From the NCBI GenBank assembly GCA_964199315.1, contig OZ116699.1, positions 12,524,001-12,588,000 on the forward strand: DNA of 64,000 nucleotides. Direction: 5' to 3'. The notes under the pieces are model-generated. The model searched no databases, had not been told where the DNA came from, and saw only the letters and a list, made by a program, of their open reading frames with translations. Below, piece by piece: positions 19,356 through 45,200 of this stretch (position 1 is its first letter; the number at the start of each line of letters is the position of its first letter). The stretch comes from Orbicella franksi. Lineage: Eukaryota. The translations under genes and the position numbers were made by a program.

Positions 19356-19500
19356 NNNNNNNNNNNNNNNNNNNNNNNNNNNNNNNNNNNNNNNNNNNNN
19401 NNNNNNNNNNNNNNNNNNNNNNNNNNNNNNNNNNNNNNNNNNNNNNNNNNNNNNNNNNNNNNNNNNNNNNNNNNNNNNNNNNNNNNNNNNNNNNNNNNNN
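19356..19500. other. Assembly gap (145 N)
   Basis: Run of N in the sequence. Confidence 1.
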
Positions 19501-26463: not shown

Positions 26464-26895
26464 TCTGTATCCTCTGTGGTTGACCTGAGTGATTACTTTG
26501 GTTTTGGATTTACGACACTCATCACAAGGGCGATCTTTGCTGACGTCATTGTTTGCATTTTGCCTCATTATCGTAAACTCCCGCTTATAACCCCCCCCCC
26601 CCCCACTCCCCTTCCGGTTATAGGCCCATCTACTTATAAAGCAAAAAAAAAAAAAAAAAAATGGTTATAAGCTCCCCGGATATAAGCCCCGCTTTAGTTT
26701 TGTATTCATTTTATCATGATGTTTTAACGCTTGATTTCCAGTAAATGAAACCCATTTCGATTAACATGTGCAGCTATAGCTCTTTTCGAAACCGTCAGTT
26801 TTTTTATTCTGGTTGTAGGCCCCCACGGATATAAACCCCTCCGTCTATAAGCCCATCTAAAAGTCCATACGAAGTTTTCTAAGCTTGTGCGGCCG

Positions 26896-27125
26896 GGACC
26901 GTTTCTCGAAGGTCTCGACAAGTTTTCGCATCCGGAAAGTCATAGCAAAATCTCGAGCCTTGTGATTACAGAGCTATTTTATTCACTTATTCTTAATATG
27001 AACAGAGGTTCCCTTCATACAAGAAGTTTCAGGCGTATACACTTCTCCGTTTTTAGATACAGATGAACTAAAACTGGCTTTACGAGCCTGAAAAGTTTCC
27101 GGGACTTTCGAGAAACGGGCCCCTG
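26896..27125. mobile_element. MITE with GG(C/A)CCGTTTCTCGAA termini (PIF/Harbinger-like)
   Basis: Inverted termini GGACCGTTTCTCGAAGGTCTCG and CGGGACTTTCGAGAAACGGGCCCC. The same element occurs in opposite orientation at 35633-35863. Confidence 0.75.
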
Positions 27126-28039: not shown

Positions 28040-31000
28040 ATGCAACCAGAAGTCGTCTTTTTCTATGGTCCTCCTTTTTCGGTGAGTGATCATGCTTTGG
28101 AGAAGATAAACAATGTATATATTTTTTTAAATACTTAAGCTTATCGTTTTTATGCCTCTTCAAGGGAAAGGATTTGTTCTATTGTTATCACTTTTCTCAC
28201 ACACACGAGAAGATTCATCCAGGAGAACTGTTTGAAACTGATCCCAGCCTGAGCCTCAGAGCAGTGATCCTGAAGATTGTGAATGTTCTCAATAAGGTAA
28301 TCATGATTGGAACCTCTTGGGACATTTTACATGTATACCATCTCCTTTGCCCTGGCCTCACGAAATTTAGGAGACTAATGACAATCTAAGTTTTGAAGAA
28401 GGGGATAAAAGGTTCAGTCTTGACCTGACATTAAAACAACATGACATTATTCCGGGAGGGTGGTGCAGATCTCTCAACCTCAAAACACCAAAAATCTGGA
28501 GACTGATGTAAAAAAATCTGGAGATTTCAGTAAAAATCTGGAGATTGATCGACCGACAGACGAAACTAAGTAAACACAGGTTCTAATTAAGAGAAAGTGT
28601 TTTGTTTTTGTCAAAATGTGAGAGACTGGTAATGATGACCTAATTTGGAACAGATGTTCTATATATGGTCATGGACAACAGTCTGTCATGGACATGTGTT
28701 TCCAGTGAACAGACGGATGAAGAACTAAACAGTTTTGTTAAGTTCAACTATGGATTTGTACAGAATTGGCACAAGGAACTCACCTAAGCAAGCCAAAACT
28801 GAAATTATACAAAAAAATTTATCCTTTCAGCTTACACCTCTATTTATCGTGAAATTTGTCTGTCTCAGTGTGAGACTGTGAGATTGAACTGAAAACTGTG
28901 AGTCTCACGACAAAGTCATGAGACTTGAGAGGTCTGAGTGACTGGTGGGTGGACTCCTACATAAAATGGATGGGGGTGCATGTCACACCTTTTAGGAGTC
29001 AAACAGGGGTTTTGGTACTACTAAGGGTGTTCAGCCTTAAAAGGTTCACAGCAGGAGCTTTTGCGGTGAGGCAAAAAAAGTCAATGTCAGTTAATGTGTA
29101 GTTTGAGAATTGGTACCTCTTAGAGGTGAAAGCAATTCAAGCCATGCCCACAAAACATTATCTTGGTTCTGTTTAGGGGTTCTTTTCAAAATTTCTGACG
29201 AGCACCCCCGTCCTTATTTATAGGAGTTCTCCCTGATAAGATCGAGTGTAACTCTGCATACCTATTCTAGCAAGTGAAATGCAAGCTATGTTACAATGAA
29301 CATCTGTTTTTTACTCTGATGAAGGCAGACAGTTGCCACCAAAAATTCAGTGAACAAAATACCTGCAGATCAGATATATTTAAGTCAAATAATACAAGTG
29401 TATGTCAAGTGTAATTCAGTGGAGAAACTTATTAATGATAGTGAAGATATCAGTCACATCACCTATTGTTATTAAATTATGTGCCAAACAGAGATCTATT
29501 AGGCGGTGAAACAAAGAGTTTTTTCCTTAATTAAAGAGAGAACTCTTTGTCTCACCACCTAATGGTACTCTTTAAATAAAAAAAAAAATTTTGTAACAGT
29601 TACACATATCTTCCCTATAAAACTCTCACAACTATTAAAAGAAAAAATATTCCAGAGGATCAGGAAAATAGAGTAGAAACATACAGTCAAGTAACAAGCA
29701 TTACCATTAAATCCAAAATTATGTTATTCATGATAATGATGGTAGTTCTTAAATATATATATGAGAAATACTTAGTATAGTTAAGTATCCATGTAGCTCC
29801 TGTGCGGCAAAATGATACAAAGTCCCCATGGTTACATTCCCTCCCTCCCTTGATCCATCCATCTTTCCCTTCCTCTCTCTTTTTCCTCCATGTATTGTAC
29901 ATGTTAGTTGCTGAATAAATTGATCATCATTATCTTATAACCTTTTTTAAATGAAGTGGTCTTCCTGTTCTTTCTGTAGAGAAGGCTACATTTTCATTCA
30001 CTTTCTCTGAGTGTGATCCACTTTGGTGTGGGAATAGTATTATATGCAAGCTTGTTTCAGAGTTTCTTAAGTTATGATTAAGTTCAATATCCCAGTCAAC
30101 CTTGGCTTATTGTCACCTCTTTGCACTAACCAGGATTTCTCATCCTGACCACGCACCAGTTCCCTAGGTACAGTGTATCTTATTACCGTTGGATTGGTAC
30201 ATGTATGTATTGCATATAGCTTAGTATTTGAACTGATCTCTTGTCTCGTAAAATTTAGGGTCAAAGTGTGGTTGTGGATGATGATAATACTAGCAAGAAA
30301 ACCAGGAAGTCATACTTGACTGTTCTTAGGAATAAGGTATTGTTTCTTATAATTTGCTGAAGATAGTTGGCATTTTAATCTGCCGCTTGATATGCCTTTG
30401 TACCTTTCTTTCTATTACATATGATTTCCATGCATTATGTTTGAAAGCTATTGTTTCCATTTAGGTTCCACAGTGCCGATTCAGAGTAATTCATTTCCAA
30501 GCATCAGATTCTAGTGCCCAGTTAATTTGTCAGTGGGCCAGAGAATGGGAACTGGCTCATCAGTTTGAATGTTCAGGATTGAAGTCATTGAAGCTGTCTG
30601 AAAAGGTTATTGAACAATGGTTTGAGACAAGAACTGGTAAGAACATGCAGTCATGTATGTATGTAGGGGTGCAAATGTAAGTCAGAGTGGGTGGTAACTG
30701 CATCACTTCTGAGTCAAGTTAATGAAGATTTCAAATATCTTCTCAGAATTATTTCTGTGGATAGTTTGACAATGTTTAAAGCTACTACATCATCCATAGT
30801 GCAGATTAGGTTGAAGATGCTCTCAAGTATACACTTTAAATTACATTTGTAACTTATTACAGTCACAAAAGAACTTTTGCCTCGGTTGTTTTGTTGTATT
30901 CAGAACCAGTCTCTGAAGAAGAAGGGTTCAGCAAGATTGATAAGGTTGATGTTCAGTTGGTGTGTGATACACCTTACGAAGTAAGTCAAACCTTATAATA

Positions 31001-34000
31001 CATATAAGTACAGTCATACAAAAGCATAGTTGAGTTGTTTTCACATCATCTCTTTTCACATACTTGATTCTTCAAACATTCAAGAGATGTTTGAAATTTT
31101 ACACAATGTCCCATTCTGATGCTGTAGCCCTACAAAGATTTTAATGTGTCTCTGAGAACAACTGATCTATACAGATGTGTTTAGCACCACATTAATAGTA
31201 TGCAGATGTAATGGGGGAAAGGCAGCTTTTGAACAAATATTTTTTCGTAAAGTACTTTGTCTGGATTTACACATTCCAACCATAACAACCTCAAAGCAAA
31301 AAGCCGGCATTTTTTCCAGGAAAACACAGACTTTTTGATCAGTCACTCATAAGCAACCTGTCACTAGAGAACATGCACAACCATTTGCTTGTGTTTGGCA
31401 TGCTAACTGCTAGTCCCTAACTGCACAGTTACACTCACTGAGGCTTTCCTGAAAAGGAAATGTCCACTGTTTATCCTAAAAGCCTCTTTTTTACCCACCC
31501 CACCCTCCTGGGTTAAAACCGTTCATGCTAGACCTGGTACCTGCTGGTAGCTGGGGCCTTGGCATGGGGACTATGCTGGAATACAAAGTTTTTACATTAA
31601 ACCAGCTGGCTTTAAAGGCGTCAGGGGAGCCTGACCTCCAGCTGATTTGAAGTTCCAGGCAATATACCCTCACCAAAAATTACAAGACAGGAGTCCCTGC
31701 CCGGCTAAATTACCTTGACAGAGTTTTATTTATCTCTCTAAATCTAATCTCTCTTTGAATTTATTTTTTCTTTGGATGCACAGTTTACTGTCCCAGCCCT
31801 CTTTCTCCAGTGGGAAGCACTATTAGAAGATCGTGAAGATCACGTGAATATTCAGGAAAGCATGGTTGATGTTGTCAACAGGTGGAGCTGCAGTAATACA
31901 CATGGAAGAGTTATTGTACTCAAGCTGAATGAAAAACACACCTGTAAAGGTGAGGTATTATAACAGTCTTACCAAGATCTCAGGCTATACAATAAGTTTT
32001 ATGAACTTCACATTGTGTCTTAATTTGTTCAGCATATTTCTTAGCCTGCATCCCTAGAATTTAACCCAGTAAATGGTGATAATGCTGGGTATGTTATCAA
32101 ACTTATGGACTGAATATTTGAATTTGGATATTTTTGATAATTTTATGTTATTTCCTTGTATATAGCAGGGCTGTCATTAAGTTTTGAGTCAACTCTAGTC
32201 AAACATTTGTTAACAGTTGTAGTAATTATCAGTAATTGAATATTTGACAATACAATTTTATTTTCTTCAACTAACACCAGAGGAAAGTTGTGAGTGTGGG
32301 GACAAGATGAAGCAGATTATCAGTAAATTGGTGTCACAGGTAAATTTTATAACAAAAAAAGCTCAATAAGTTTCTTCATCTTTGGTGCCCTCTCCTCCTT
32401 AATTGGCACCTTCTATAACTTCTGTGTCCAGATAATAAAACATCCCCTATTTTTCCTCTTCCCTAGATGGTAAGCCATCTCACAATAATTTGTTAACTGC
32501 AAAATTAATATCTGTGAGGTAACTACGTGTTAGAGTTGCCTATTCTCTGCCATGTTGACTTTTTATTCTGGCTCTTTGATAGGCCCTGGGTGATGCCTAA
32601 TTAGAACAGAATTACAGAGCTCTTCTCAATCTAGTTCTATATATTTGATAGTTTATTTGTGATTTAAAATAACTCCCTCATAGTCTTTTTTATTTTTTAA
32701 ACTCCTTGGCTGCTAGAAATAGCGTTTCAATTACACTAGGTAAATGAAAGAAAAATGGCCTACAGAGCAGCTACAATGTGACAGGATTGACTCCTCCTTA
32801 ATAAGCTCGACTGTGCTTATGAAGCTGTCATATCTACACTGACTGATCTTATCATTTTTTGTATATTTGAGGTGACCATTCCTGTGTTCTTTGTGCACTT
32901 GTGTTCATTCATGTGGCAATTCAGCAGACCTCCCAATCCAGGAGTGTTCGCTTGTCTTCAGAGACTTCACAACATTGATTTGTTAAACAGGGTAAAGTTA
33001 ACAGTCTGCCGTTTCATGTTTTTTGTAGCATAGTTTGTGATCAAGTATCTTTTGGAATCCCATCTTGGAGAATTTGTTGACTTTCCTGGAGCCTGCTACT
33101 TTCCACAGGAGTGATACTAAAATAAGGCTTTCTCTAATCAGGGAACAAGAATCAAAAACTATTTAATACTTATAGCTTATCGTGAAGAAGTACCTAAAAC
33201 AGAAATTGTTCCACTGACTGAGTTTTGACAGACAGATTTTTTCTCAAAACGAAAGAGTGCAATGAACAAAACTAAACTTTTGTAAGTTAAGAGTGAACTG
33301 TTCTACAAGTCATGTAGTTACTCATGTGTCCTGTACATTTTGTAATTTTATACTGTTTTCACAAGTGACATGACTGACATGATCCCAAATTGATTGTATT
33401 ATGTTTCATATCTGTCTCCTCTGTAAAGCTGAGAAAAGTTAAATAAATTTTCTTGTCTTCGTGTCTCTTGCCTTTTCTTGACATTGAATAATAAAACAGT
33501 GCTGTTTGATACCGTGCAGTGAACTCTGGTTTGCATGTACGATAATACATGTAATGATAATAATAAGAACACTGTAAACGAATTGTGCATTTGGCTCGCT
33601 GTGTTTTGTTCCCTTATTCAGGCCACGTTCTATATCAATTCAAGTGACGCTCAGTCAAAGGCGGCCACCGCGGCAGGAGTGAAGAGTATCAAGGTGAAAC
33701 CATTTTTGCAAAAATGCAAAACGTGCAAGTCCATTCATGTTGTTGTTTTCTTACGTGTATTACTAATTTTCATGTATTCCACTGTCTGTGAATGGTTAAA
33801 GAAATCATGTGTTTCTTCTCCACTAGGCAATTAAACTATTCCACAATCCACAGATGGTAAGTGCAATTCGTGCTCAATAACACGCTTGTATTCACAATGA
33901 TTCCACTGGCATTTGCAAGTAAAACATATTTCCTACTGTTATCTGAAATTTCATTCGAGTTCATTCGAATCTGCCAAAGTTTTGGATCAAGAGGTCGAGG

Positions 34001-37000
34001 AGATGGCTGGCTTTTCATGCTAAAATAATTAAAAAAGTAAATAACTTTATGAAGTGTCAAATGTATTTAGTACTGTTCTGCTAATTGGAGACACTGTAAA
34101 TAAATGAACAAATAATATTTCAAATAGAACAGAAATTTTTAAGAATCCCAACTGGTGAGAGGCTGAGCAGTTGGCTAACTTCATTTTTCACGTTTCGTTT
34201 GGCAGATTAATGCTGTGCATTGTAGAGTGGCAGCACAAGTCCCTGAATATGTCAGCAAGGCAAAGCTAGCATGGTTCGGTTCCCACAACAGGCCTGAAGC
34301 TTGTCTTCCTCTCTTTCGTGAGGCTGTTAAGTCCCAAACCACTGCCAGTGTTCATCACATGTCACCGCAGTGTGTCACTGCAGCAAGGAACTCATATGTC
34401 CATGGAGTGTGCTTTAAAGACTTTGAAACTTTGGGCAGGTGCCTGTTACTTATTAGCATTAATATTATTTTCATTACATCTATCTGTTTTTAAGTGGTGC
34501 TTGCTGCCATTCACCAGTGAAAGAGCCAATGCCACCTGCATAAGGAAAATCCCATATAACGAACAACCTTTTCCGAACTCAGCAAATTTCTCTGACGTGA
34601 TATTAGCCCTTAAATAACTTAGAAGGAGGCAAGGCGTTGAATTTTTGAGCTCGATTATAACGGACAACTGATCAGTTAGAGGGGTTAACAAGTGGTGGCC
34701 CATGAAATCGTGGTTTTACCGAATCACATTATCAAACTGATACTAAGATTTCGAGGAAACGGTTTTTTCAAAACGTAGTGTTACGTAACTGCTCGTTTTC
34801 AAATTCAACGTGAAAATGAAGAAGTCGCGTAAGGAAAGTTCGCGCAAAAATATCTCGTCGGCGGTCTCAACAATACCTTTTAACAAGTACTTTATCAAAG
34901 GGTGGGTGGATAACGCTATCAACCGGATAAGTTGCTATTCAATTAAAAAAAAGCTTCTGCCGGGCTGATTTGTTCAGTTACTCAGCCTTTGAACCCGGGA
35001 GAGGGCAAACTGAACAGTACACATTCATTTAGAAAAGTAGAAAATATGAACGAAATTGATGAATCATGTCATATTGCTGTTTTGGCAGGTTCAACTCCCA
35101 GTACAAACATGCTGCAACACCAACAAAACCAGCATCACATGATATATTCAACTACCATCAGTCCTCCAGTGAACTGAAAACATGCAACTGGGGAAAAGAA
35201 CAAAATGTTCAGTGTAACTTGGTTTCCTCTGAAGTACCTGGAGCAAGTATCATACCAACGGACAAGTCTCCTGTGTGCAGTAAAGTGAATGAAAAGAAAC
35301 GTAAGCTGTGAATTGTTGTTGCCTTATTGTATTGTAAAAAGAAACACGTTATGTAAGTTACCAAAGAGAAACTTTGTTGATATATGAACAAATTATTCCA
35401 AGCATGCAGGATTTAAGCAATTTTTCCGTGCTTTATTAGCCACATCTAAACACGAGAGAATTTGGGAGAATTCGAAACAGTTATGTAAACCTGAGACGCA
35501 TGCTTTTATCAGAGATTTCTCAAAGGTACTCGCGAATCTAAAATGTCACAACCAAGTTTTCGTACTCTCATCTAAACCAGTGAGTGCAGGCGTAGTATCT
35601 CATTTATTTTATAAAACGTGCTTAGAGACCTCGGGGCCCCGTTTCTTGAAAGCCCCGGAAACTTTTCGGGCCCGTAAAGCCATTTTTAGTTCATCTGTAT
35701 CTAACAACAGAGAAGTGTATACGTCTGAAACTTTTTGTATGAAGGGAACCTCTGTTCATATTAAGAATACGTGAATAAAATAGCTCTGTAATCAAAATGT
35801 TCGAGTTTTTGCTATGGCTTTCCGGGTGCGAAAATTTTTCGGGACCTTCGAGAAAAGGGCCCCGCAGTCCCGGGTTGTTCGAAAAGTGGATAATGCTATC
35901 CAGTGGATAGCGTGGTTTGTTTTGTTGACTCTTATTCACTGGATAGCGAATTATCCGGTGGATAGCGTTATCCAGCCTTCGAAAAACCGGGGCCAGGGAG
36001 GTGAAGTTTGCATCCTTCACATTGTGTGAGAATAACCGTCGTTATTGTTGCCGATTTTGTGGTCTTTGTGTTTTTTTTGTTTTTAAATTTTTTCGTCCTC
36101 TAACTCCCTTCTAGTTCCTGACGCTATTTGTCCAAGTCTTATGGTGAAACATTTAACGAGAGAGGTAATTGAGAGCCATGCTTTCAGTTCAGGTCATTTC
36201 AGGCGAGGTGAAGGCTGCACGAAGCTCATCCGTAATGTTAAAAGTACCATGGTGGAAGATGGCATGCAATTTACCTGTCAATGTGAGTACGGTCTCCATG
36301 TGTGCTTTATCTAAACCGCTTTACCGAAATTGTTTTGCTGAACAGATTACTTATGCTGCTCTGCACATTGTGGCCGCTTTTCATCTGTCCAAAGAGTCTG
36401 GTTTCAATTTCCGGATACTCCCCTGTGATTGGGACATCATGTTTAGGTTCACAACCTTGTTTCAGTTACATGTATACCCAAATATTCGAATTGTTCGTTC
36501 CATTCAATTTTGCTCCCGTAATTTATGCAGTTTTCGGAATTCAGTGATTTCTATTTCGGAAATTCCGCAGTTTTCGAATTCTCTACAAACTTTCTCGGGA
36601 AAGTTTCTGTCCATTGGCTTCCATTCCTAGTCTACCGAATTTTCTTCACTGTACTTTGGTAAGCGTTTTTCAAAGAAATTTAAATTCGCGTAGGCTGTGT
36701 TAAGTTCCCAGCTATAGGATCTCGGCGCTCTTACATTTTGCTGTCAGTAGATCTTAGTTCAGCCATGTGTTAGGTGTAATTGATAACTGACGCTCTGGTG
36801 CTTGTGTTGCCGGTTTTTTATATCACAGCAATTGTTGTATGGGACATTTATTTCCTGGTATTTTTCTGTGCTGTTGGAGATGGACTGCTGATATTTTGTT
36901 TTCCCAACAGGTATCGGGTCCCAAGGTCAATTCTATGATGTGTCAGCAGTCGTCAGTCAGAAAGGTAGGTAAGCAAACGGCCATGTTAAGGTGATATTCA

Positions 37001-40000
37001 TCACAAGACCCTTTCTAAACAGATTAGGTGCAAACATCGGATTGGATAGGATTTCCGTTACTCTGTGACCTGTTATCAGTACCGCCTACCTCCTTTTGAT
37101 CCCATCGGGTGTTTAAAGCGACAAAAAACGAGATCCAGTTCTGGGAAGTGTTCCTCTGGACCGGCCCTGTGTGACGCATCCTACCTGATGGCGTCATGGC
37201 AATAGATTTACTCCCAAAAGTGTGCGTAATAGATTGTCGTTGATCTGGTGATCTTCCCTTTGAACTGCTCTACTCGTGTTTCAAAATGTTTCGTGTGCTG
37301 CGCGCCTTACCGTTGCCAACTAGGAAAGTTATTGATTAGTTTTTGACCCCTTTGTGACATCTTTTCGACAACTTCAGATGGCTTCCGTTTCAAATGGCCA
37401 ATCAAACTTGTCGCTGGTCTCGAACGTTCGCAGGTTGAGACTTTTTTAAATTCCCGCTAGAGTGAATGATGAATTTGACAATTTTACATCTCCGCCCTCG
37501 ATAGTTCCCATGTTTTGATTGGCCTACTCAAATAGAAAGTAGCAAAAAATTGTCAAAAATAGGTCAAAATTTAATAAAAAACTTCAAGTGGGATCGGTTC
37601 GGTGTAAGAACAATTTAGTGGCATCTCATTTAATGGTTTAGTGTATGCATCATCATTGTCATTTAGCTACCAAAGACGATCAAACTATGTGACAAAGAAG
37701 AGGTGTTATCTTCAAATATGGAAAACAACCATTGTTACTGTTGTAATTTTGTGGTCATTGTACTGACAGGTCTTGAACGAGCTGGGTGTTGTTGTGCTGA
37801 TCCCGCAAGTAAGCTGGGAAGATGTAAACATGCAGTTGGCTTGTTACTTTGGTGCAAGAATGAGAAAAACGTACGTTATCTTGAAGCTATGTTGGAGTTT
37901 TATGTTGCTCTTTCTGTAGACATTTCCTTTCGTTATTACTTGTATGGAGAACATACTCATCGTCTAAGGGCAATCAGTGCCCAGCGAAACGGCTGAAATG
38001 GCACTGAGAACATGATTATATCTTCTTGTTATTTTTTTGGTGGGGGGGAGGGGGGTTGAAGGACAGGGGAAGGGTTGGCAAAGCACCCGATAATTTCTGC
38101 TGCTACTGTGCTGAAATCTGATTTGGTTATTGCGGCTTTTACGTTGGCTTGAATAGAACTGTAATTGTTTCCAGATAAGAACTGTACTTGGAGATAAAGT
38201 GAATGTGAAGCTTGTTGTCATTGCAGATGAAAGAAATTAAGAAGGCCGTGCCTTCAAGCAACCTGGAACATGTGATTACAACAGCCGCAAAACGAAAGGT
38301 AGCAATGGAGCAGTAAGGTGTTACTCTTTTACATCATGTTTATCTTATTAGGTTGTTAACTTGCGTCGGAGAAACCACATAACCATTTGCCAGCTAATCT
38401 GATGGCTGCCCCATACGGTGATCACTACCTATAATCATCTTTGTCCATTCTTGAACCACTGAGAACCTCTCGCAATTTCTCCATCACACCGAACAGCGTT
38501 CCACTTTCAAAAATACAACCTATGCCACCATGGAAACTGGTATCTACAGTGTCAGCGACACTGCAACAAACGCCAACATATTACAAACGAGTAAGATCCC
38601 TGCAACAGTCAACTGAACATAACTAAAACGAACAAGAGAAAGCATTACACAACCTGTAACATCTGTGCTGGGTGATAAAGGAAGATAACGCTGGCGCTGC
38701 ATTGTAGACACCTTTTGCCATGAGAAGCATAAAGAAATAAGTTAGTACGTCAGTTTTCAGTATAAATAACTGCGAAAGGGCGTTGGCTACCAAACCCACT
38801 AAACCCACAACGCATGGCTCTGTGTTGCGTCCATAAGTTCAGGGTGTCTCTGGAACAATTAGCCGCGTATAAAAACAGCAGCAGATTCATGCTTGATTCA
38901 AGCCACAGAAAATTTCTATCAGCAGTCGTTTTGCTCGACCAAAGCAGCAGAAACCGACCGTCCATCATCTGGGGTAGCACACAAAATAAGTTGCAAACAG
39001 TGCAATTTTGTATGCTATGGCCAAACCGAACGATCACTGAAGACGCGGGTTCCCGAGCACAAAAAGGCCGATCATAGTTCTAAAGTTGCGCCGGGGAGCT
39101 ATGTCCACGATTGTTATCATCAGATGGACTCACACAACGTCAAAGTCGTCCGTCATGAGCCACACTGCCACCAGCGGCTTTTCCTTGAAGTTTGGATGTG
39201 GGAATGACCACATATATCCCAGAAATCTACAAATGCTTAGCACGCGCTTTAAGTTTTAATCTCGCGAAGGACCAGCTGAAGAGTTAGCTGAAACGTCTTA
39301 GTATCATCTACAAAATATGACTCAGTCACAAACATTTATCAGTTGTTTCAACGACCTCTTGCAAGCTATTACGATTATTTTCACTATATATAGGAAGCGA
39401 TATGTGATGTGTCTTCAAAAGGGAGGGAAGAAGAAGTTCCCTCGACTTTGCGGAAAGATAAATCATTGCCCAAATGGATTTCATCTCTAGCACAGGTAGG
39501 ACGTGCTATTATTGCAAAGTTATGTTACCTAAGTAATTATAATGGACAAGTTTACACACTACTTTACCGTGCAATTCTCACAACAAGTTTACCTTTCAAC
39601 TTGTCTTGTAGTCCGCTTCACACGACGGTGATCGAGTAAAGAGACCGAAAGCAGAAGGCACAGTCACTACACAACGCCAGAAGAGGTAATGAGAAGTGTA
39701 AGGAATCGATGTCTTCTATGTTAATCAAAGAAGTTACAATTCCCGTGTATTGCAGGTTCAAAACGAAAAAGAGCGCAGAAAGCACAGTGTATTGTTTGAG
39801 TCCAGAAGAACTGCTTCAAACAGCTCAGGAAATAATAGAATGGGTGAGAATCACTTTATGACTTAAGCCGACATCTTATGTCCAAGCAACTATTAACTAA
39901 CTGTTTTATTGCTTTTCTTTTTTCGTAACATTCATTTTGTAAAATAGTATCGTTCCTCCTCGAGTGACCACGGCGTCGACAAACACAAACAACAGGGAAC

Positions 40001-41791
40001 TGATCACAACAGAAGCCGATACAAAGACAGTAGACAGGTGGAACGGAGGTCTAATCAGAGTTCATACATAAAGAAGGAGCCTTATCAGAGAGTGTGTAAC
40101 AGGTACGGTGAAGCAAATGAACGAACCACCCAGCCACCCTCACTTTGCTCTCTTAATACCTGACGGAATCATCTTTGATTACATTCTTTAGAGCATTAAC
40201 TCCTAGCAGAGTTTGTTCACTGTAAAGTTTTTGAGTAGAGTCTTTTTGAAGTCCATAACCAACTAATTTCAAAACACAAGTACTTTGTGCAAGAATCTCA
40301 AATTTCGAACAAAATCATTCGACAATAGCTAGCTTACTAAATGCATCATCGCTCAGTGAACTTGGCTTGCCTAAATAAGCACGTTTTTGTAGATGATTTG
40401 TCGGCTGTCAGTTAATTTCAGTAGAGGGAATGGATGAACATGAAATTTCTCCTTTATTCGGCAATATACTTTCAAACAAACAAGTGATTGAACTGGTGAG
40501 AACAATTTGCCTGCGTATATTGCGTTGTTGTCCAAACCAATTTAGGGCAAAACTCGCATTGTGCCTAAAGAGCGCCCAAGCGAGAATCAAGTGACTGGAA
40601 TTGTTTACAATGTCGAGTGTAGATCGTGTTCGTTTGTATACATTGGCGAAAGCAAAAGATCTTGGAATTCTCGGGGGACAGCACAAGCCTGGCACAAGAG
40701 GAAACAATGAATCGGCAATTAAACAGCACGCGGAAACGACTGGACATGATATCTATCCCAACTATGTAGAAGTACTAGAGCGTGGCGTTACCAATCGACA
40801 AAAACGCTTATATCTATATGACTAGCTCCGTGAGCGGGCAAGATGAATCAAATCTTGCGCTGTGATTGCAAATCATGCAAATTACAAAATAATTGATTCA
40901 AATGTGATGACCTGGGCAAACGTCACAAAAATACACACTCCCCCATTTGCCAAACGCCATTTCCCCCATGACGAGCATACGCTGTACAAAGACAAGTTCG
41001 CGACCGGAAACGAAATTCATTGCTGACATCAACACCACTGCTTATGACCGCTGTTCAATTGTTGTTCGCTAACAAAAGCACGGTCAAGCATTGAATAGCT
41101 GTCGTCTCCGATACGCTGTTCTCAGAGCTGCATGTAATTTTTCACAATTAATTGCCAAAGCAAGGCCCGACGAGCACTATATTTCAGCATTTCGCCAGCA
41201 AGTCCTAGCAGTAACAAGCCGCCCATCAAGTGAATAAAACGGGGACACGTGCTTATTCCCGTGCTTTAATGAACTACAATTTGTGAAATAGGATCGACGC
41301 AAGTTCGACGTTTGTTACCACGCTGGAATTAAGTCGACTCTTTGTCGCACCTATTTTCAGTTTATTCGACGCCATTTGGATTCGACGTTTGCCCTACTAG
41401 GCCTAAGTGAATAAGAAGTAAGGATATCTGACGCGATATGCAAACTAACCTGAGTAGTTTGTTTGACTGCTTCAGCCATTTTCTTTTCTTTTGTAGAGAA
41501 AAACTGGATTCTTCTGTAAACACTGATGTTTATAGCGAGGAAGCAATTGTCAGAGAAAGCTGTCAGCAGTCTTTGTCGAACTGCCCAGATGTTGGTTTAA
41601 TAAGTGAAGTAATTCCTGAATCTGTTGCAATGAGCACACCAGAATGCTACTCTAAAGAAAATAACCCAACTATTCATGAACCACCCTCACGAATGAGAGA
41701 AGCTGATAAATGCATGCAGGAAACACAGCAAGACATCACTGACCGGGAGAAACATGAACCAGTTACATCAATACTAGACGAGTTTATTTAA
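28040..41791 (+). CDS. Uncharacterised multidomain protein: PNKP-type kinase-like + degenerate HAD-IIIA + SWIM zinc finger + CYREN/MRI-like C-terminus (about 833 aa, 21 exons)
   Basis: Phase-consistent, stop-free GT-AG exon chain: 28040-28081, 28165-28296, 30259-30336, 30465-30636, 30904-30980, 31784-31949, 32281-32339, 32872-32991, 33622-33693, 33827-33856, 34206-34438, 35089-35300, 36115-36282, 36911-36964, 37770-37870, 38227-38298, 39394-39495, 39612-39685, 39756-39843, 39948-40102, 41497-41791 (2502 nt). Motifs: GPPFSGK, GQSVVVDDDN, EEGFSKI, RPPNPG..IDL, AAGVKSIK, CCCAD...CKH, KSLPKW, TVYCLSPEEL, SILDEFI*. Confidence 0.8.
35633..35863. mobile_element. MITE, same family as 26896-27125, opposite orientation
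   Basis: GGGGCCCCGTTTCTTGAAAG...CTTCGAGAAAAGGGCCCC termini. The internal sequence is the reverse complement of the 26.9-kb copy. Confidence 0.75.
35870..35997. mobile_element. Second MITE abutting the first (TGGATA-repeat family)
   Basis: CCGGGTTGTTCGAAAAGTGGATAA ... TTATCCAGCCTTCGAAAAACCGGGG inverted termini with internal GTGGATAGCG repeats. Confidence 0.65.
38380..39290 (+). mobile_element. Degenerate Penelope-like element fragment (RT tail + GIY-YIG endonuclease)
   Basis: ORF 38893-39207 reads GVAHKISCKQCNFVCYGQTERSLKTRVPEHK...H.MD..NVKVV..E.H.HQRLFLE, a Penelope GIY-YIG pattern with decayed motifs. Confidence 0.75.
40490..40830 (+). mobile_element. Second Penelope-like GIY-YIG fragment, frameshifted
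   Basis: GIVYNVECRSCSFVYIGESKRSWNSR / HKPG...SAIKQHAETTGHDI...VEVLERGV.N..KRL, spread across two frames. Confidence 0.78.
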
Positions 41792-42264
41792 TGAATACTT
41801 CAACATGTACAGATTGTGTCATAACACAACATAATTATGATGATACCGTCACATTTTTCACTTATTTTTGTTTAAAGCAAACGAAGGAAAAAGAAACCAA
41901 GTGTGTTGTTTTGCTTTCTGAGGAGACAGTTATATTTGTCATACGCCGATACTCACCTGGACGTTCAGTTTATATGGTTTGGGAGATCAGAGAGTGTTGG
42001 CGGCGTTGATCATAGCAAATGGGGCTAGCACAGAAATGTCGGTTAAAATTGGCCTATTGAGGGTTAAGTAATGTTACTGCAAAAGGTCGTGTTCAAAGTT
42101 CGCATTATCCAGTTTCATCGTTGTGTAAAGTTTGTTATATTTTTAAATTAAAATCTTCTAGGATTTATCTTGGTTGTTTCTTGTTAAGCATGAGTCATAT
42201 TCCAAGGCCAATTCAGTCTCATTATCAGACAAAAGACAGTTTGTTAACAGCAATTGTTGTCAGC

Positions 42265-45200
42265 CTAAATTCCTTCATTTCCTGTTGTAATTGTGTGCCT
42301 TTTCGCATTTGGTTTGGAAATCTTTTCCTTTATTGTAGCATACACATCCTGTACCGGTCCTGCCCTCTGGACATTGTCCCTGATGCGATGAATGTCATTT
42401 CCCAGGGGTCTGTACAATGCTACAACTATGACGTATTTGCCGCTTGGACTTGGTGCTGCACCCATTCCTAATTGAGTGGTGTCTTTCCAAACCATCTGCG
42501 TGAAGTGCTTCACTTTATCGTTCAGCTCTGGATAAGAGAAGCTGAAAGCCTTCTTTTCACTGTACCATATCGTTGTCGCCTTCAGAGGCGCTCTCGGTAG
42601 GTCGTGCCAAATCTGAGCGATGTTCTCACCGACTGGCTCCCCTTGGAAGGTGGAAGGGTCGCTGGCTACAGATTCTGCTGTGCGCTGGGCTTGTTCAGCT
42701 AGGGTAGCATTCCACTGAAGAGGGAACACGTGATGCATCGCCCTGAGTTTGTTATGAGCCACCAGGGCTTCTTGAAATACTGCATCTGTTTTGATAGAGA
42801 ATAGTAATACATTTTCCTGTGTCACATATGGACTTCAGAACTAAACAAAATACAGATTTTCCCCTTCCATTTACCCTTCAAGCCCCAGTGCAAATGTAGC
42901 ATTTTTCTTATAGTGCAAGTTATGGAACCTTTCTACCTTCCAAAAACTCTGTTACCTCGTTTGTATCCCACAATTTAAAACTGAAAACCTCGATTCTCTA
43001 AATCGCCACCTTCTGTCGATACTTACTGCTGCCAGTGCTGCTCCTGTTACTGGGGGTGACACTGGTGATGATGTTGGTGGCCATGGTAGGGTTGGCCAAG
43101 GTGGTGGTGTTAGGAAGAGTTCCAGTTCCACTGGTATTTTTGGGCTTATCCTCCTGTTTAACGACGGCAATGCTGTCATTCTGAGGAGATTGGATGTTTC
43201 TGTTTTCATCATGCCTCTTCTGTTGATCTGCTTTTTCCTCGGCGATGTATATCTCGAGGGTTTTACGTGAAGCGGCTTTTGGTGGGTATCATGCACATGC
43301 AGGGGAAAAAAATTGAACAGAGTATGTCTATCTTTAAATGGAGATCTCACCCAGAGTTATCTTACTACCTCGAATGAACATCTAAGACACCTGGCAAACT
43401 TTCTCTTCGCGAAGAATATACTGGAATCTTCAGAAGCTGATTCACCCGTATTTCTTCCTTAGATGTATAAGCCGGACAGAATGGACTGTTTGGCTGACTG
43501 AAAGCTCCTGAATTTCTTAGTTGTTAATACTCCGACTAGTATCACGAGTACTGAGAGGGCGTTTAAACGAGTTAGGGGGGTAACAGTGGTGCAACACCTC
43601 AAACTAGCTGCGAGATTAGCTTCCTTGCAAAACGTGAGCCTCTCGGTAAAGTAAGTTACTAATTATTTCTATGCTCTCTCTATATACGCATTTGTCAACT
43701 GGACTGAACAAGGGATTATTTACGCAAGTAACTCACCTTCTGCAATGGACTCTTCTGGCCCGTATGCCGATTGCTTGTCATCTTCAGCCCCGACCAGTAA
43801 ACCTTTGTTCTTTAGCTTGTTCAACTCTTTTCCCAAAAAATGACCTATTATAGAATACAAAGTATCATATAATCAATACTCTAGACACATCTGTAGGAAA
43901 ATTTATGTTTTCTTTTAACTAAAAATGAGATTTAATTGAAGAACACTCTTCAGGATTTTACTGACCGAATCGAATATAACGGGCAAGGCCTTTCTCTGGA
44001 AGGAAAGAGTTTACAACTGTGTGCTCCGTATAAGTTGGACATGTTTTTATTGTAACCCACCTGGTCGCCTTCCATCTTGGATGATAAATTTGTCGTCATC
44101 CTGAGATTTGTATGGGCGCACAGCATCGAGTATCTCCTCCTTATTTCTCTCTCTTCCCGTTACTTCACTTAATATGTCTGTAGCAGGAGCTGACGTATCG
44201 TTTAATTCTTCCTCGTATTCACGTGTTTCATCAGTACCATCTGTAAATGCAACAAATCATCTTTGTGCGGTACAACCATCCCCGCCTCTAATGTGACGCG
44301 AATGGAGTAGTCCAAAGGCATTCAATGAACGTTTCTGATTACCATCTATACAATGGCTTTCCACTGACATAATTTCTTGGTACTATCGAGTTCACTTGAA
44401 ATATTAGTCTGCTTCTTAGCTCTCGGTCACTGTCCTCGTGAATGAAGGATGACGGATTATTTGCGTGGGTGATATGTAGGAGGGATGTTAAGATATAACC
44501 CTCAGGATTGCCTCCTACTTCAATTCCCCGAATGTTCCTTACACGAGATTGCCCTCAGTGGGGCCGATAAACAAAAGATATGAATCATGTGAATCTAGAA
44601 AATGAAAATGACTAGCAAATAGTTAATGTGCTAAAGAAATATCAATAAAGTCCTTTCAGAAGTGTCAACTTTAGAGGCTCGCTAATGGTGTTAATTACGT
44701 CGATACAGTTTATATACCTTCTGGAAGTGGCCTTTGAACTTCAATTCGCCTGTTACCTCGTCCAATCAACGGACTCAGAGATTTTGGTTTCTTTGTTAAG
44801 ACAACACCAGTATTGATCAGAACATCCGAACTCTTCTTTGTTGCATTTGCAATAAGTACGTGGTTTGTCCTAGTGTTGTGTGGACCCAGTTCTGCGTAGA
44901 GTTTCATAAATATACAGGATACAAACGTCAGAAAAAAGGCTCTCTCCAAGAGTTACAGGGATAAATGACCCTGCTACAATTGGTTTGCAATTCATGAAAT
45001 TAAAGGACCACTGTGAATTGCAGCATATAACCTAAGTGACATAATGAGATGAATTTTCACTTTTGTGTTATCTACACAGGCATCAACTACGACAACGAAG
45101 TTGTAACTACTTCTCGTGCAACACACCTCAGAGAATTTCCACGCAATGCCGTTGTTCTTCACGAACGATAACACGCGTTTTGTTTTGTACTTTTAGCTAC

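Follow-up and report, generated by a model that had tools for sequence, protein, structure and literature searches.

A 21-exon stony-coral gene combining a predicted pseudo-polynucleotide-kinase module, a SWIM finger and an MRI/CYREN-like tail

The DNA end-joining regulator MRI/CYREN is small, disordered and a matter of debate, and its partners (Ku and ERCC6L2) and multimerisation domain have been mapped only recently. To our knowledge, descriptions of this adaptor module have so far been confined to vertebrates, where it forms a microprotein of its own; the human form (C7orf49), an accessory factor of non-homologous end joining, has 157 amino acids. Here we compare it, together with mammalian PNKP, phage T4 Pnk and its viral relatives, the scaffold APLF and the SWIM proteins, with a gene of the coral Orbicella franksi, located at 28040-41791 on the + strand of a 64,000-nucleotide window (assembly GCA_964199315.1, contig OZ116699.1, positions 12,524,001 to 12,588,000; all coordinates below are those of the window). 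At a probability of roughly 0.45, we read its 833-residue product as a putative non-catalytic end-repair adaptor, in which a dead Pnk module is followed by a SWIM finger and an MRI/CYREN-like tail.

The gene comprises 21 exons, all on the + strand, that were spliced at AG acceptors and GT donors into one stop-free frame (2502 nt, corresponding to 833 codons plus a TGA stop at 41789-41791). Every acceptor is AG, every donor is GT, and all phases are consistent across the chain (21/21 exons). This reconstruction reproduces the exon count and length of a sequence-only reading of the same DNA, which had proposed 21 exons joined in matching phase into a frame of about 833 residues. The region has about 40% G+C and lacks long open reading frames, as expected of an intron-rich animal gene. 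Exons 1-12 were positioned by full-length coral orthologues (tblastn onto the window, then splice-site refinement), and read evidence covers exons 13-21. A kinase-looking candidate exon chosen by eye at 28654 was dropped, orthologue alignment placing the true exon 3 at 30259. In a blastp comparison with the Oculina orthologue P0016, the alignment covered residues 1-833 at 67% identity (1101 bits), and the partial same-species model P0001 matched the reconstructed protein at 98.8%.

PolyA RNA-seq reads aligned over 35900-41899 revealed eight GT..AG junctions on the + strand that chain exons 13 to 21 (36282->36911, 36964->37770, 37870->38227, 38298->39394, 39495->39612, 39685->39756, 39843->39948 and 40102->41497; positions are given after small cut shifts). 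The exons joined in this way translate without a stop up to the terminal TGA, and a loose read end before 36115 carries the last bases of exon 12, ending at 35300. The sequence-only reading had named 38227 as the point at which the chain might break into two genes; junction 37870->38227 demonstrates that the SWIM exon is spliced into the downstream tail, with reads continuing to the last exon.

An artefactual chain, stitched together from two neighbouring genes or from read-through, would find some support in P0001, a truncated public model of the same species (source JGI) that begins only at an internal Met within exon 8 and, at its 3′ end, runs on into the intron that follows exon 16. Junction reads, however, join exon 15 to exon 16 and run on to the last exon, and every part of the chain is present in full-length transcripts of orthologues and in NCBI models; two transcript-derived orthologues (P0014 and P0015) show the same fused architecture within one mRNA. 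We regard this explanation as largely refuted already and very improbable. The locus is one real, expressed 21-exon coral gene, and the reconstructed chain corrects the truncated public gene model of this coral.

An exhaustive search with exon 13 returned a 717-aa Acropora cervicornis protein and the partial same-species model, otherwise short fragments. Word-indexed searches brought in further relatives: proteins of Oculina patagonica and of Pocillopora verrucosa, along with two that derive from transcripts. All relatives recovered by these searches were stony-coral proteins or unlabelled short fragments, although the family may range more widely, the exhaustive search having used exon 13 and not the full spliced protein. 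The orthologues are annotated as "uncharacterized" or "SWIM-type domain-containing". A literature search returned no description of a dead Pnk module, a SWIM finger and an MRI-like tail in combination, and the sequence-only reading likewise knew of no described protein uniting PNKP-type folds with CYREN/MRI motifs. The protein is a new arrangement of known modules.

The N-terminal kinase-like domain is encoded by exons 1-5. Exon 1 (28040..28081, aa 1-14; orthologue alignment and GT donor) supplies the start codon and the first half of the P-loop (GPPFS), while exon 2 (28165..28296, aa 15-58; orthologues, TIGR01663 and hhalign) supplies the remainder (GKD). Exon 3 (30259..30336, aa 59-84; orthologues, PDB profile search and hhalign) encodes the kinase strand VVVDDDNTS, matching the "DNTN" region of PNKP and T4 Pnk. 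The kinase-like core lies in exon 4 (30465..30636, aa 85-141; orthologues and TIGR01663), and the domain ends in exon 5 (30904..30980, aa 142-167) with EEGFSKIDKVDVQL, where the TIGR01663 match reaches profile position 507/520.

Database searches used P0016 as a proxy for the 833-aa spliced protein. Pfam was nearly silent on the N-terminal half (AAA_33, E about 0.01 in orthologues). The NCBIfam PNKP model TIGR01663 matched residues 3-164 in four of four orthologues (E 5e-8 to 2e-3), and the match falls on the kinase part of the profile (positions 364-507 of 520). Profile-profile comparison by hhalign paired the coral N-terminal half with the T4 Pnk family, represented by ten phage proteins taken from annotated phage records, at 95% probability (E 2e-8); the 257 aligned columns extend across both domains, and the score comes mainly from the kinase. 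A Bacillus phage Pnk was matched at 92% (E 5e-7). A PDB search with the family profile returned PNKP chains as all of its top matches, at non-significant scores. Collectively, these comparisons establish the N-terminus as a kinase domain of the PNKP/T4 Pnk type, and the PNK-type kinase of the sequence-only reading has thereby gained significant profile support.

The catalytic motifs of this domain appear eroded, as had been claimed. The Walker A motif GxxxxGK[ST] reads GPPFSGKD: the Lys is kept and the following Ser/Thr is replaced by Asp. In most orthologues this residue is Asp, Ala or Glu, and P0015 alone has the canonical GPPCSGKT. No alignment retains the segment that holds D35 and R38 in T4 Pnk; it is either deleted or substituted. 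That the protein is an enzyme and not a scaffold, with the kinase half still acting on nucleotides or polynucleotides, could nevertheless be argued from the P-loop Gly and Lys, which are invariant across orthologues, and from the intact motif of P0015. Set against the replacements after the Lys in the other orthologues and the loss of the D35/R38 segment in all alignments, such residual activity seems improbable.

The HAD-like half begins in exon 6 (31784..31949, aa 168-222), where the hhalign alignment of the coral proteins continues beyond the kinase as far as motif I and sets PALILQWEGL in register with KALLIDLDGT from a phage kinase-phosphatase. The corresponding remnant in this gene is ALFLQWEAL at 31796-31822 (DxDGT to QWEAL), and a possible motif II remnant, LNEK at 31913-31936, was mapped by eye only. 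Exon 7 (32281..32339, aa 223-242; orthologue alignment) encodes a HAD-like insert with CxC. Exon 8 (32872..32991, aa 243-282) carries a motif III remnant, FSRPPNPG at 32920-32943 (RKPxPGM, with Lys replaced by Pro), and exon 9 (33622..33693, aa 283-306; hhalign) a motif IV remnant, INSSDAQSKAATAAG, in which both Asp of GDxxxD are lost. The half ends in exon 10 (33827..33856, aa 307-316; orthologue alignment).

Against a HAD-IIIA profile built from two huge-phage proteins (L019 and L020, described below), E. coli GmhB and three phage homologues, hhalign aligned the coral FSRPPSPGL...HSSDSHSKAATAAG with CRKPxPGM...VGDxxxDxxxAxxxG (p 0.0057, motifs III-IV). Campylobacter and Bacillus phage "polynucleotide kinases" were dropped as templates for this second domain, as they carry HD, not HAD, phosphatases. 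A language-model feature search with the first 330 residues returned viral AAA_33+PNK3P proteins of about 300-400 aa as all ten of its best named clusters (score 0.92, 175 shared features). Together, these results make it probable that a phosphatase fold of the HAD-IIIA type lies C-terminal to the coral kinase, the same arrangement as in T4 Pnk and the viral AAA_33+PNK3P proteins (about 311-320 aa). For the kinase-then-phosphatase order with eroded motifs put forward in the sequence-only reading, the kinase part stands and the HAD half is probable only.

Key catalytic residues are probably replaced in both halves. Across the corals, DxDGT reads QWE[AG]L, RKP reads RPP and GDxxxD is lost, and these replacements are invariant, a pattern suggestive of a pseudoenzyme under constraint and not of a gene in decay. 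The coral protein resembles T4 Pnk and the viral AAA_33+PNK3P proteins in domain order, in size and in the hhalign match; it differs as a spliced animal gene with extra domains, and viral kinase-phosphatases keep the DxDGT, TNQ, RKP and GDxxxD motifs that it has lost. With mammalian PNKP it shares the type of kinase domain (TIGR01663) and remnants of a HAD-IIIA-type phosphatase, whereas its domain order is reversed, its catalytic residues are replaced, and general family searches reported no FHA domain for it.

An intact version of this motif layout was observed in two unannotated open reading frames of 318-322 aa from uncultured huge phages, L019:379-1347 (LR756511.1) and L020:388-1344 (LR756500.1). 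In both, the PNKP-like kinase is intact, and the HAD-IIIA phosphatase behind it keeps its full set of motifs, the CxH...CxC loop among them.

Between the Pnk module and the finger lie exon 11 (34206..34438, aa 317-393; orthologue alignment), which is conserved and matches no recognised family and no Pfam entry; exon 12 (35089..35300, aa 394-464), a poorly conserved linker placed by orthologues and by the fit of its 3′ end to the RNA loose end; exon 13 (36115..36282, aa 465-520; junction 36282->36911), which is conserved; and exon 14 (36911..36964, aa 521-538), flanked by RNA junctions on both sides. The predicted SWIM zinc finger is encoded by exon 15 (37770..37870, aa 539-572; RNA junctions), with CxC...CxH at 37787-37831 within the pattern C-C-C-x9-C-K-H. 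Pfam SWIM (PF04434) scored 23.0 and 23.3 bits in P0014 and P0017 against a cut-off of 19.6; it fell below the cut-off in P0015 and was unreported for P0016 searched as a whole protein. The finger proposed from sequence inspection therefore passes the gathering score in two orthologues. The coral protein shares the finger with SWIM proteins such as ZSWIM7/SWS1, and no similarity to them was found outside it.

The tail (exons 16-21) is poorly conserved save for a few strongly conserved short elements. The three elements named in the sequence-only reading were compared with sequences printed in papers. Exon 16 (38227..38298, aa 573-596; RNA junctions on both sides) is missing from isoform X2 of Oculina and isoform X4 of Pocillopora, and its sequence diverges elsewhere. 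Exon 17 (39394..39495, aa 597-630; MRI motif scoring and RNA junctions) carries a candidate A-type Ku-binding motif (A-KBM), RKDKSLPKWISSLAQ, at 39451-39495. When the human MRI A-KBM peptide SETKTRVLPSWLTA (PMC4831024) was scored against the whole coral protein, its best match was TLRKDKSLPKWISS in this exon (shuffle p 0.014). The Ku-binding-like motif (KSLPKWISS) is conserved in Oculina P0016 and in the coral fragment P0022. Exon 18 (39612..39685, aa 631-654; RNA junctions) forms a basic spacer.

The second element lies in exon 19 (39756..39843, aa 655-684), where TVYCLSPEELLQTAQEIIEW at 39784-39843 resembles the central strand and helix of MRI. In human MRI, 52-TVY-54 binds the HEBO domain of ERCC6L2 (bioRxiv 10.1101/2025.11.28.691009), and 54-YCMN-57 together with V64, L66, I68 and L69 constitutes the multimerisation domain (bioRxiv 10.64898/2026.07.22.740027). 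Using only the ten residues printed in these two preprints, we found a strand (52-TVYCMN-57) and helix resemblance at the level of the motif rather than of a profile, with TVYCLSPEELLQTAQEII scoring highest both in the model and in four orthologues. The shuffle p ranged from 5e-5 to 3e-3 in four of these five sequences. Exon 19 is 66-86% identical across corals, compared with 0-25% in neighbouring tail exons; it is among the best conserved exons overall and the best conserved within the tail. The layout is likewise similar to that of MRI, with the strand and amphipathic helix following the A-type motif by about 40-45 residues: the spacing from the Ku-binding motif Pro to the central-motif Tyr is 45 residues here and 40 in human MRI.

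Downstream of the helix, both proteins continue with a long, poorly conserved stretch and finish in a conserved motif whose residue at position -2 is aromatic. In the coral gene the stretch includes exon 20 (39948..40102, aa 685-735; RNA junctions), presumed disordered from its low conservation, and the motif is SILDEFI at 41768-41788 in exon 21 (41497..41791, aa 736-833 plus stop; junction 40102->41497), present in every orthologue that reaches the C-terminus. This third element had been interpreted as an XLF-like motif. C-terminal 11- to 15-mers score negatively against the XLF-like motifs of MRI, XLF and WRN, no better than other stretches of the protein, and only the aromatic at -2 is shared; the coral C-terminus also lacks the basic patch. 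SILDEFI was not counted as such a motif, and scoring lends no support to that part of the proposed tail.

If the adaptor reading is correct, the dead Pnk module would still recognise nucleic-acid ends or phosphates, and together with the SWIM finger it would provide recognition of ends or of partners. The tail would act like MRI/CYREN, its TVYC strand and helix mediating multimerisation, binding to the ERCC6L2 HEBO domain, or both. Contact with the vWA domain of Ku80 would be made, in this coral lineage, by the KSLPKW motif, drawing the protein to double-strand breaks. We infer a role in DNA repair, with Ku recruitment and DNA-end binding. In concept, such a protein would parallel APLF, an end-joining scaffold whose disordered region carries an A-type Ku-binding motif and is joined to further interaction modules. 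APLF uses FHA and PBZ domains, and beyond the motif the two have no sequence relation.

Several observations weigh against this adaptor reading. In the N-terminal region, the HAD half alone was not significant against T4 Pnk (hhalign), Pfam or PDB, with Pfam PNK3P reaching just E 0.13 in orthologues, and AlphaFold models, at pLDDT (predicted local distance difference test) values of 33 for full-length Oculina and 36 for the N-terminal 330 aa, yielded no fold evidence. In the tail, Pfam MRI (PF15325) gave no match at E up to 10 in whole orthologues or isolated tails, a word-indexed search with the tail profile returned only coral exon fragments, and a language-model search on the tail scored 0.66-0.68, equal to noise. 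The motif tests were post hoc, the motifs having been picked beforehand in the sequence-only reading, and they indicate resemblance, not membership. The minimal A-KBM core R-x-x-P-x-W is loose, fitting >600 human proteins (PMC4831024), and the coral K-S-L-P-K-W has Lys where the core, like MRI itself, has Arg. The motif exon has moreover diverged in proteins of the Acropora type, pocilloporid transcripts skip it, and many orthologues lack the Ku-binding motif. For the CYREN/MRI-like tail originally proposed the evidence is mixed: the central strand and helix match well, the Ku-binding motif fits in this coral and is absent or divergent in Acropora-type and pocilloporid proteins, and MRI family membership is unsupported by Pfam.

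Alternatively, the gene and its folded domains are real, but the short linear motifs of the tail resemble MRI by chance or convergence and the protein acts elsewhere. We consider this a real possibility, although not the one we favour. The protein might then serve in RNA-end repair or tRNA metabolism, as T4 Pnk does, act in recombination by way of its SWIM finger, or be the product of a domesticated gene from a virus or mobile element. MRI is recovered by none of the profile methods, the Ku-binding motif is confined to some coral lineages, the C-terminus is unlike XLF-like motifs, viruses supply the closest relatives of the N-terminal half with the same domain order, and the family was found only in stony corals in the searches made, all of which accord with this alternative. 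It accounts less readily for two independent MRI elements in the right order and spacing, one of them forming the most constrained exon of the tail, and for a PNKP-type kinase fold that itself belongs to DNA-end repair.

We also recorded several features around and within the gene. A single open reading frame of 186 aa on the - strand (42265-42825) encodes a strong CAP (cysteine-rich secretory protein/PR-1) domain (Pfam E 3e-19); it is convergent with the 21-exon gene, its end lying 474 bases past that gene's stop. Within intron 16, continuous read depth similar to that of exons was seen at 38500-39300 in one run, a stretch containing a 114-aa open reading frame (38863-39204) without a Pfam match; this depth could reflect intron retention or a transcribed repeat. 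In the last intron, about 50 bases (40815-40868) show RNA depth several-fold over the exons, with many reads running into unrelated sequence on both sides, and probably form part of a repeat expressed elsewhere in the genome.

Two further open reading frames, at 26887-27066 (+) upstream of the gene and at 35691-36020 (-) in intron 12, encode, in opposite orientations, a near-identical stretch of some 55 residues (RPGPFLEG...HFSV.RYR). The intron 12 copy had no match in Pfam, and the pair has the look of an interspersed repeat. An assembly gap, written as 145 N, occupies 19356-19500.

Human MRI stands alone, whereas about 570 aa of folded domains precede the coral tail. A broader and rather doubtful proposal is that the Ku/ERCC6L2-adaptor module of MRI/CYREN is ancient and in corals forms the tail of a large protein with a dead Pnk module and a SWIM finger. 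The vertebrate microprotein could then be the remnant of such a protein, or the coral gene a fusion; in either case, bringing an end-recognition domain to breaks occupied by Ku would have been the module's original job. If the motif resemblance proves convergent, a coral-restricted orphan architecture of moderate interest remains. If the adaptor reading holds, the gene would represent a natural case of a pseudo-kinase/pseudo-phosphatase reused as a binding domain, and a cnidarian protein bearing MRI motifs on a PNK-derived pseudoenzyme would provide an evolutionary handle on the purpose of the module.

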